Positions 18,016-49,659 of a stretch of 64,000 bases of DNA are shown piece by piece. Under the pieces are notes generated by a model. The model made no database searches. It was not told the origin of the DNA and worked only from the letters and a program-made list of their open reading frames with translations. This DNA comes from Podarcis erhardii (lineage: Eukaryota): assembly GCA_964252035.1 (NCBI GenBank), contig OZ176211.1, one strand, 5' to 3'. Position 1 is the stretch's first letter. Each line of letters opens with the position of its first letter. A program made the translations under genes and the position numbers.

Positions 18016-18163
18016 ATCATAGAATCATAGAGAAGTGGAGTTGGAAGGGACCAGGAGGGTCATCTTAGTCCAACCCCCTGCAATGCAGGAATATTTTGCC
18101 CAATGTGGGGCTCAAACACACAACCCTGAGATTAAGAGCCTCATGCTCTAGCAACTGAGCTAT
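18016..18163 (-). mobile_element. Short SINE with tRNA-Lys-like head and CR1-type tail (partial copy at about 49870-49960)
   Basis: Reverse complement reads ATAGCTCAGTTGCTAGAGCATGAGGCTCTTAATCTCAGGGTTGTG..AGCCCCACATTGGGC, then TTCCTGCATTGCAGGGGGTTGGACT...GGTCCCTTCCAACTC..CTATGATTCTATGATT. Confidence 0.8.
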
Positions 18164-18630
18164 GTTGATGGACAACTGCTGAAAAATTTGCTCCGCTGTC
18201 TGTTAGTATTGAAAATGGCTCATCATTTTATTACATTTGTCATTTGATTTCAGATCATAAGACATCAGGAGATTTTCCGCAGACAATATAATTCAGTCTT
18301 AAATGAGTTTGCGTTGGGTTTGGATCACTAAGCTCCCTCTGCTTATTAGATCAGTGCTCTAGGACAGCATGCTTAAATTCCAAGTGTCCATAGATTCTAA
18401 TAAATAAGCAACAGACCTTTTCCAAAATAACACAAGGCTCAACAGTGCAGCTTTAAATCAGTTTTCTGTCAGAACGTATTATACCCGTTCATATGTCATT
18501 ACCTGTTTTCAGATTTTGAGCTGTTCACTAAAACCTATTTCAGTTAGCAAAGTGTAAGTTGAGGACTCCTCCCAAGAGTGATGATTTCATTTACTTTTTA
18601 TCCATGTTAAACACCTCCCACCCCCCCAGT

Positions 18631-21575: not shown

Positions 21576-21579
21576 ATAT

Positions 21580-21622
<43 letters not shown>
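21576..21622. repeat. (TA)n microsatellite, left flank of the PLE (right flank 22209-22252)
   Basis: Read directly from the sequence. Confidence 0.95.
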
Positions 21623-21624
<2 letters not shown>

Positions 21625-21706
21625 TTTCGTAGATTTTCACGGGTACAGGAATGCAGGTTTTGGTGTCCTCGGGTGTCTTCCCGTGTAAAAGTTGGGGTGT
21701 CTAGGC

Positions 21707-21740
21707 GACGTTTCGACGAGGTCTCACTCGTCATCTTCAG
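21707..21740 (-). ncRNA. Minimal hammerhead ribozyme motif, minus-strand copy 1
   Basis: Exact reverse complement of the 22091-22124 motif. Confidence 0.65.
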
Positions 21741-21878
21741 GCTGGTGCTTTCGGCTTCTTGTTACTGGAACAGAGCAGGATCTCAGTGTTTGAGTTCCTA
21801 TAAATACTGTAGAGGGGGTGTGGTGTATAGCCTCCAATGTTCTGGGCAGAGAGGAAGTTCCCAGGCTAGTGTGCCTTT

Positions 21879-21912
21879 GACGTTTCGACGAGGTCTCACT
21901 CGTCATCTTCAG
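21879..21912 (-). ncRNA. Minimal hammerhead ribozyme motif, minus-strand copy 2 (ends at the GUC triplet)
   Basis: Same core as copy 1. The sequence 3' of GUC is replaced by the duplication junction, so it has no helix I of its own. Confidence 0.55.
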
Positions 21913-22090
21913 GCTGGTGCTTTCGGCTTCTTGTTACTGGAACAGAGCAGGATCTCAGTGTTTGAGTTCCTATAAATACTGTAGAGGGGGTGTGGTGTAT
22001 AGCCTCCAATGTTCTGGGCAGAGAGGAAGTTCCCAGGTTAGTGTGCCTTTTCTTCTTTTGTTCCTTAATTACTTGAGAGATATCTTGAGC

Positions 22091-22124
22091 CTGAAGATGA
22101 CGAGTGAGACCTCGTCGAAACGTC
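22091..22124 (+). ncRNA. Minimal type I hammerhead ribozyme motif (PLE-type), plus-strand copy
   Basis: CUGAAGA-U-[GACGAG/ugagac/CUCGUC]-GAAA-CGUC with palindromic ACGU helix III; predicted cleavage after 22124. Activity untested. Confidence 0.65.
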
Positions 22125-22206
22125 GCCTAGACACCCCAACTTTTACACGGGAAGACACCTGAGGACACCAAAACCTGCATTCCTGTACCCGTGAAAATCT
22201 ACGAAA

Positions 22207-22255
<49 letters not shown>

Positions 22256-22289: not shown

Positions 22290-22343
22290 AAAAGACTCAG
22301 TGTGGCACTTTTCAAAAGACTCAGTGTGGCACTTTTCAAAAGA
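22290..22343 (+). repeat. 24-bp perfect tandem duplication
   Basis: aaaagactcagtgtggcacttttc twice, plus aaaaga. Confidence 0.95.
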
Positions 22344-49575: not shown

Positions 49576-49659
49576 GTGGCAGTTTAGCAGCCGTACATAT
49601 GATGTCACTCCTAAAAGTACAAGTAAATGACGTCATACATACGACCACCAAGCCACCAC
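49576..49659 (-). ncRNA. MIR489: microRNA precursor mir-489 (5p UGGUCGUAUGUAUGACGUCAUUU at 49625-49647; 3p GUGACAUCAUAUGUACGGCUGCU at 49586-49608)
   Basis: The reverse complement folds as a hairpin whose arms match the sauropsid miR-489 sequences I recall. It lies in the CALCR intron after the first coding exon and on the host strand. Confidence 0.93.

Follow-up and report, generated by a model that had tools for sequence, protein, structure and literature searches.

Can the edge of a tandem duplication in genomic DNA mark the place where an RNA was cut by its own ribozyme? The question is raised by a Penelope-like insertion in the 64-kb window (the whole stretch of Podarcis erhardii DNA that was analysed), in which the joint between two tandem units falls on the bond that a hammerhead is predicted to cleave. 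Positions are those of the window; element positions are numbered from the ATG that overlaps the ribozyme, with ORF position n lying at 21735 - n on the minus strand.

The insertion and its duplication seam

The duplication was measured in several ways. Tandem Repeats Finder (TRF) reported a period of 172, 2.0 copies and 99% matches over 21707-22050, and an independent repeat search returned the same two 172-bp units. A script comparison found a single mismatch between them, C at 21866 in unit 1 and T at 22038 in unit 2. The initial annotation, which had described two 172-bp units with one mismatch, was thus borne out to the base. Neither the bases preceding the two units (C at 21706 and T at 21878) nor those following them (G at 21879 and T at 22051) agree. 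Because the flanking bases differ on both sides, the seam cannot be shifted in either direction. On the minus strand, GAAACGUC is followed by AAAGGC at the seam and by GCCUAG at the intact end. The last letters of unit 2 are ...CGAAACGTC, up to 21879, and AAAGGCACAC comes next; unit 1 closes identically at 21707 and runs on into GCCTAGACAC. The breakpoint had been placed exactly 3' of the GUC triplet, that is, at the predicted C17, and this position was confirmed, with 0 microhomology on both sides and 0 filler. On the other hand, the sequence beyond the seam had been taken for unrelated internal sequence, which was wrong: AAAGGCACAC is -144 of the element's own pLTR. The canonical sequence upstream of AAAGGCACAC (22051-22087) was matched by contigs of a related species, with a loose end at 21877. 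Splicing was rejected as the source of the seam, as the removed segment would start with GC and end with GA and the seam position is fixed. A self-excising 172-nt circle was also ruled out, helix I being absent at the seam.

The duplication lies within a 586-bp fold-back insertion between two (AT)n tracts (Table 1). The arms of the inverted repeat are 153 nt long and 99% complementary (21591-21743 and 22088-22240). The minus-strand copy runs in the order -181 to -145, -144 to +28, -144 to +28 again and +29 to +112, and a shorter plus-strand copy faces it. The inverted junction at 22087/22088 needs at least one further homology-free end-to-end join of two cDNAs, which fits the priming on both strands shown for Poseidon_Ac (PAc) of Anolis carolinensis (PMC11167929). 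The only mismatch between the arms, at 21671/22160, is a private CpG change and not a family variant, consistent with some age since insertion; this CpG transition at 22160, in the inverted arm, changes codon 22 of the element ORF start from CGA to a TGA stop.

Table 1. Features of the insertion, in order along the window (TRF, Tandem Repeats Finder).
Feature	Position	Strand	Remarks
Left (AT)n tract, target microsatellite	21576..21622	.	abuts 3' end of minus-strand copy; TRF
'Tail' module, ORF +29 to +112	21623..21706	-	starts just past the predicted cut, ends at reverse-transcription start site
Unit 1	21707..21878	-	pLTR -144 to ORF +28; ends GUC, runs on into canonical GCCUAG; TRF, repeat search
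Putative minimal hammerhead 1	21707..21740	-	CUGAAGA-U-GACGAG/UGAGAC/CUCGUC-GAAA-CG-UC; native 3' flank
Seam	21878..21879	-	+28 (C of GUC, 21879) joined to -144 (A, 21878); script
Unit 2	21879..22050	-	second copy of -144 to +28; T at 22038; TRF, script
Putative minimal hammerhead 2	21879..21912	-	AAAGGC follows; helix I lost (A opposite C at 1.1/2.1)
Canonical -181 to -145	22051..22087	-	likely ORF stop TAA at -165 or -161; same sequence in X3 loose-end consensus at 21877
Inverted copy, -9 to +112	22088..22208	+	contains putative hammerhead 3 at 22091-22124; arm of inverted repeat
Right (AT)n tract	22209..22252	.	TRF

The locus is a Poseidon/Penelope-type element inserted in an (AT)n tract of a lizard CALCR intron. 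A full-length Rfam match to the mir-489 precursor was found at 49576-49659 on the minus strand (105.5 bits), from which we take the window to lie within the CALCR intron. As is characteristic of Penelope/Poseidon, the pLTR of the element carries a hammerhead where the ORF starts, and the 3' end of the element falls within the ORF, at the 'tail' sites. The (AT)n on both sides and the inverted 5'-truncated partner are those of a Penelope-like insertion, for which AT-rich or (TA)n insertion with such a partner has been described (PMC8557442). An ORF for reverse transcriptase and GIY-YIG endonuclease was not found at the locus, where the copy is 5'-truncated; the coding remnant consists of 37 N-terminal codons and about 6 codons before the likely stop. 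A blastn search with the 465-nt element found no further pieces of the family in the 64-kb window, and exact-sequence look-ups found neither the seam-spanning 60-aa ORF nor the 78-aa tail ORF on record. Apart from the duplication seam, this is an ordinary truncated fold-back Penelope insertion, and it is young.

Three other features of the window were recorded. The tandem hammerheads lie on the sense strand of the host gene CALCR. A perfect 24-bp tandem repeat, AAAAGACTCAGTGTGGCACTTTTC, is present in 2.2 copies just right of the insertion (22290-22343). At 18101-18164 on the minus strand, a weak tRNA-like match (31.5 bits, barely over the gathering score) probably represents a SINE-derived or degenerate tRNA.

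A putative minimal hammerhead at the pLTR/ORF boundary

In the window, the 34-nt motif CTGAAGATGACGAGTGAGACCTCGTCGAAACGTC has three copies, two on the minus strand and one on the plus strand, where none would be expected by chance. It was assessed by hand against the hallmarks published for the minimal hammerheads of metazoan Penelope elements (PMC4209133). The core boxes CUGAAGA and GAAA and the GUC triplet are present. An extra U separates A9 from G10.1, G10.1 pairs with C11.1, and helix II (GACGAG/CUCGUC) has 6 bp, where 6-8 bp is the published length; its hairpin was recovered by folding. Helix III is absent, and A15.1-C-G-U16.1 reads ACGU, which is self-complementary and palindromic at 15.2/16.2, as expected of a hammerhead that works as a dimer. 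The hallmarks are those of the published motifs save for a short helix I, which has 2 bp in the native context (G1.1-C2.1 and C1.2-G2.2) and no pairs in the seam copy. Helix I is 4-5 bp long in minimal Penelope hammerheads and 2 bp in that of Drosophila virilis (PMC4209133). Paired motifs on opposite strands, 100-700 bp apart, were noted in the same study and are found at this locus as well. By these features the motif would be a Penelope-type minimal hammerhead at the pLTR/ORF boundary that carries most of the listed hallmarks, with helix I short. The earlier statement that PLE pLTRs carry minimal hammerheads holds here, with a helix I of only 2 bp.

The Rfam hammerhead models (types I, II, III, HH9 and HH10) gave no match to the locus at the gathering score or at E up to 10, and none is expected for a motif without helix III. 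Scans with the motif pattern gave five bacterial chance matches in metagenome contigs and none in viral contigs. Close to the cut site, a CGUCG direct repeat and the ACGU palindrome might on their own make slippage of the template more likely.

The closest comparison is with PAc. In both elements a minimal hammerhead spans the boundary of pLTR and ORF, its A9-U-G10.1 overlapping the start codon, and the cut is predicted after about nt 28-29 of the ORF, at the end GAAACGUC; for PAc the site has been put at about position 30 (PMC11167929). Both have two reverse-transcription start sites about 28-34 nt apart, here at +84 and +112, and both show an AT-rich target, both-strand priming and inverted copies. 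For PAc, a tail of ~34 nt (about +85 to +119) and priming of both DNA strands have been described; its pLTR ends ...CUGAGG, and its ORF begins AUGCCUGCC...GGGCGAAACGUC/AGG, with the slash at the cut (PMC11167929). In vitro, the PAc ribozyme cleaved the equivalent bond when the element protein was present and not otherwise, and its C3/G8 mutants behaved in a hammerhead-like manner (PMC11167929). The two differ in helix II, which is GACGAG/CUCGUC here and GCCUGC/GUGGGC in PAc with compensating changes. The N-terminal peptides differ too (MTSETSSKRR... here, MPAIDVGETSG... in PAc), as does the sequence. The shared core and GAAACGUC end, together with the compensating changes in helix II and the unlike peptides, argue that it is the RNA structure that is conserved. 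Helix I has 2 bp here and 3 bp in PAc, and the untranslated pLTR is about 160 nt long here and 126 nt in PAc. The locus has a seam at the cut site, whereas no PAc copy with such a seam has been reported.

Source of the two units and behaviour of the family

Logan contigs from three species and raw RNA reads from one were aligned to 21623-21878, a reference that ends at the seam. The family contigs were 57-86 nt long, and the joint from 21878 to 21707 is not callable on a reference ending at 21878. The lizard family is very abundant and young; its summed word depths reached 1e5 to 1e6, and it was very uniform. In organism A, where the locus is best represented, only one site of the 256-nt module had a variant at 1% or more. 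This was 21866 C>T, with a word depth of 1615/126729 (about 1.3%); in organism E the same variant reached about 12%.

The mismatch between unit 1 and unit 2 falls on this one variable site and shows the same base, which favours two source RNAs over a later duplication of DNA. A random later mutation would hit that site with that base in roughly 0.4% of cases, and two family RNAs would differ there and nowhere else in about 2.6%. The units were probably copied from two different RNAs during retrotransposition, an explanation favoured by roughly an order of magnitude over later DNA duplication. The mismatch may also stem from a mutation hot spot or from a duplicated master copy marked by T. As to the seam itself, its exact position between C17 and 1.1, with neither microhomology nor filler, fits an end-to-end jump and not a homology-driven internal switch.

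The best-supported loose ends listed for the three species, in these short contigs, were at 21651, 21742, 21782 and 21877, the start site at 21651 and the fold-back at 21742 being conspicuous. Those at 21651 (+84) ran into (AT)n in all three species and represent the second reverse-transcription start site, and family 5' ends or fold-backs at -7 to -9 (21741-21743), just before the ribozyme, were likewise seen in the three species. Among the best-supported ends listed for these species, none fell at 21706 or 21707. The initial annotation had called for a comparison of breakpoints with the GUC; no peak at GUC was visible among the listed loose ends, in short contigs and on a reference that ends at the seam. 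Other junctions of the family lie elsewhere, for example 21802 to 21728 and 21766 to 21623. A single-copy contig of organism A, with a joint from 21708 to 21690 and an inverted duplicated GAAACGTC 8-mer by the tail, was considered and rejected, since 2 nt of microhomology puts its breakpoint at +26/+27 and not at the cut site. RNA reads (X23) were flat over the cut site, at about 108-111 per bin, with no pile-up of read starts or ends.

The same RNA reads carried clustered T>C changes over 21623-21878 when the first mate was on the plus strand and A>G when it was on the minus strand, and a loose end at 21875 proved to be the canonical upstream sequence with many T>C. The clustered changes look like A-to-I hyper-editing of dsRNA from fold-back copies.

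Explanations of the seam and relation to known systems

The best explanation, held tentatively and with a little less than even confidence, is that reverse transcriptase jumped onto the end of a ribozyme-cleaved RNA. A single retrotransposition into (AT)n, with both DNA strands primed, would have left two 3' modules head to head. In the minus-strand copy, reverse transcriptase would have started at +112 of a first RNA (RNA 1) and copied it through the hammerhead and the pLTR to -144, where the template would have ended. It would then have jumped, without homology, to the free 3' end of a second RNA (RNA 2), ...GUC at +28. Such an end is the product that would be expected from the protein-assisted, dimer-type hammerhead of the element. 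RNA 2 may have been the dimer partner of RNA 1 within one ribonucleoprotein particle, and a dimeric protein-assisted ribozyme would hold the cleaved partner RNA near the enzyme. RNA 2 would have been copied to -181, and the product joined to the short cDNA of the other strand (-9 to +112).

Several observations count against this jump. It is a single event that was picked because of the coincidence. The donor would end at -144, and the usual 5' end of the family is at -7 to -9. The weak 2-bp helix I, the Rfam null result, the flat RNA reads at the site and the lack of listed loose ends at 21706/21707 weigh in the same direction. Moreover, 3'-phosphate or cyclic-phosphate ends are poor template-switch acceptors for some reverse transcriptases. 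Of the jump from a 5'-truncated template to a cleaved RNA, as put forward in the initial annotation, the seam at C17 and a probable retrotransposition event with two templates stood up to analysis, while cleavage of the acceptor by its ribozyme is what we infer from the position. The seam could be a trace of self-cleavage in a living cell, a single locus being insufficient as proof.

The main rival is coincidence, in which the extra unit came from some process independent of cleavage (template switching, end joining or duplication of DNA) and its edge met the GUC bond by chance; we regard it as possible, if rather doubtful. It draws on the fact that there is only one locus, on a very abundant family with many rearranged copies, some of which will meet any given bond, and on the other family junctions, which lie elsewhere with no visible GUC enrichment and with RNA that carries no sign of cleavage. 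However, a random duplication edge in the 293-nt module would meet the GUC bond in only about 0.3-0.7% of events, the lack of microhomology is unusual for replication slippage, and a mismatch at the sole polymorphic site of the family argues against a later duplication of DNA. Another rival is an inherited seam, in which a master copy, perhaps the one marked by T, already had the duplicated pLTR and the locus is one of its offspring, so that the seam is older. The T variant at -132 does occur in organism A at a depth of tens of copies, but a hammerhead without helix I before the seam has no obvious advantage, and no seam-bearing ORF is on record; this origin is rather improbable.

Cleavage without a jump would be implied if the GUC end, as a 2',3'-cyclic phosphate, had been ligated by an RtcB-type ligase to a 5'-hydroxyl at -144 and the resulting chimera or circle copied. 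Ligation of this kind has been proposed to circularise retrozyme RNAs (PMC7229834, PMC4209133), and the seam is clean, with no added bases. Yet there is no hint of an RNA with a 5'-hydroxyl at -144, the mismatch between the units is a family variant, and a 172-nt circle would lack both the +29 to +112 tail and -181 to -145, so that a jump would still be required. We consider such joining of RNA improbable. Finally, the extra unit might be an error made when a palindromic repeat with many copies was assembled. Assemblers are known to have difficulty with the tandem and inverted structures of Penelope (PMC8557442), and the locus is not spanned by any of the listed contigs. The difference between the units is a genuine variant of the family, though, the flanking sequence and the two (AT)n tracts fit together, and the 586-bp insertion is far under the length of long reads, all of which makes an artefact highly improbable.

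The jump onto a cleaved end was also set beside what is known of related systems. Our literature search found no paper on genomic seams at the cut site of a Penelope hammerhead or on jumps onto cleaved ends. For Penelope elements, circular RNA and more-than-unit-length copying have been proposed, not jumps onto cleaved ends, in a study that gives no evidence of cleavage in cells (PMC4209133). The role of hammerheads in endonuclease-bearing Penelope-like elements has been described as unclear (PMC8557442). Insertion of PAc in vitro does not require the hammerhead, and cleaved RNA has not been observed in animals (PMC11167929, PMC8557442), nor were RNA-seq ends found at the PAc cut site (PMC11167929). 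Among non-LTR elements, R2 and others carry a 5' HDV-like ribozyme that sets an RNA end recognisable as a precise DNA junction, and their reverse transcriptases jump end to end between templates without homology (PMC3774820). The difference from R2-type elements is that here the cleaved 3' end would be the acceptor of the jump.

Non-LTR retrozymes consist of tandem units of 150-400 nt, each with a type I hammerhead, and are related to Penelope pLTRs (PMC7229834; bioRxiv 10.64898/2026.07.22.740005). From our analysis, the 172-nt dimer looks like a first step towards a retrozyme array. In contrast to retrozymes, the locus has two units only, and the seam destroys the upstream helix I, leaving a unit that cannot self-excise. 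An array with active hammerheads flanking every unit was not found at the locus, and the aligned contigs and RNA reads gave no evidence of circular RNA. No mechanism has been proposed for the route from pLTR to retrozyme array (bioRxiv 10.64898/2026.07.22.740005), and the published model of the pLTR invokes read-through transcripts of tandem copies with internal initiation of reverse transcription (PMC11167929). The initial annotation had gone further and seen in the seam a general account of how tandem PLE arrays form, which this locus alone does not support. A broader proposal is that GUC-cyclic-phosphate fragments from the dimeric hammerhead in the Penelope RNP regularly serve as jump acceptors, which would be the birth step of pLTR-only arrays and of the non-LTR retrozymes of animals; we think it unlikely.

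If the jump onto a cleaved RNA did take place, the position of the seam on the very bond of the cut would testify that a cleaved RNA end had existed in the germ line. Ribozyme cleavage would then be tied to the intricate tandem arrangements seen in these elements, and also to a pLTR origin of retrozyme arrays. If such jumps were regular, a genome-wide excess of +28/+29 seams would be expected, and this would be the first evidence of the ribozyme cutting in a living cell.
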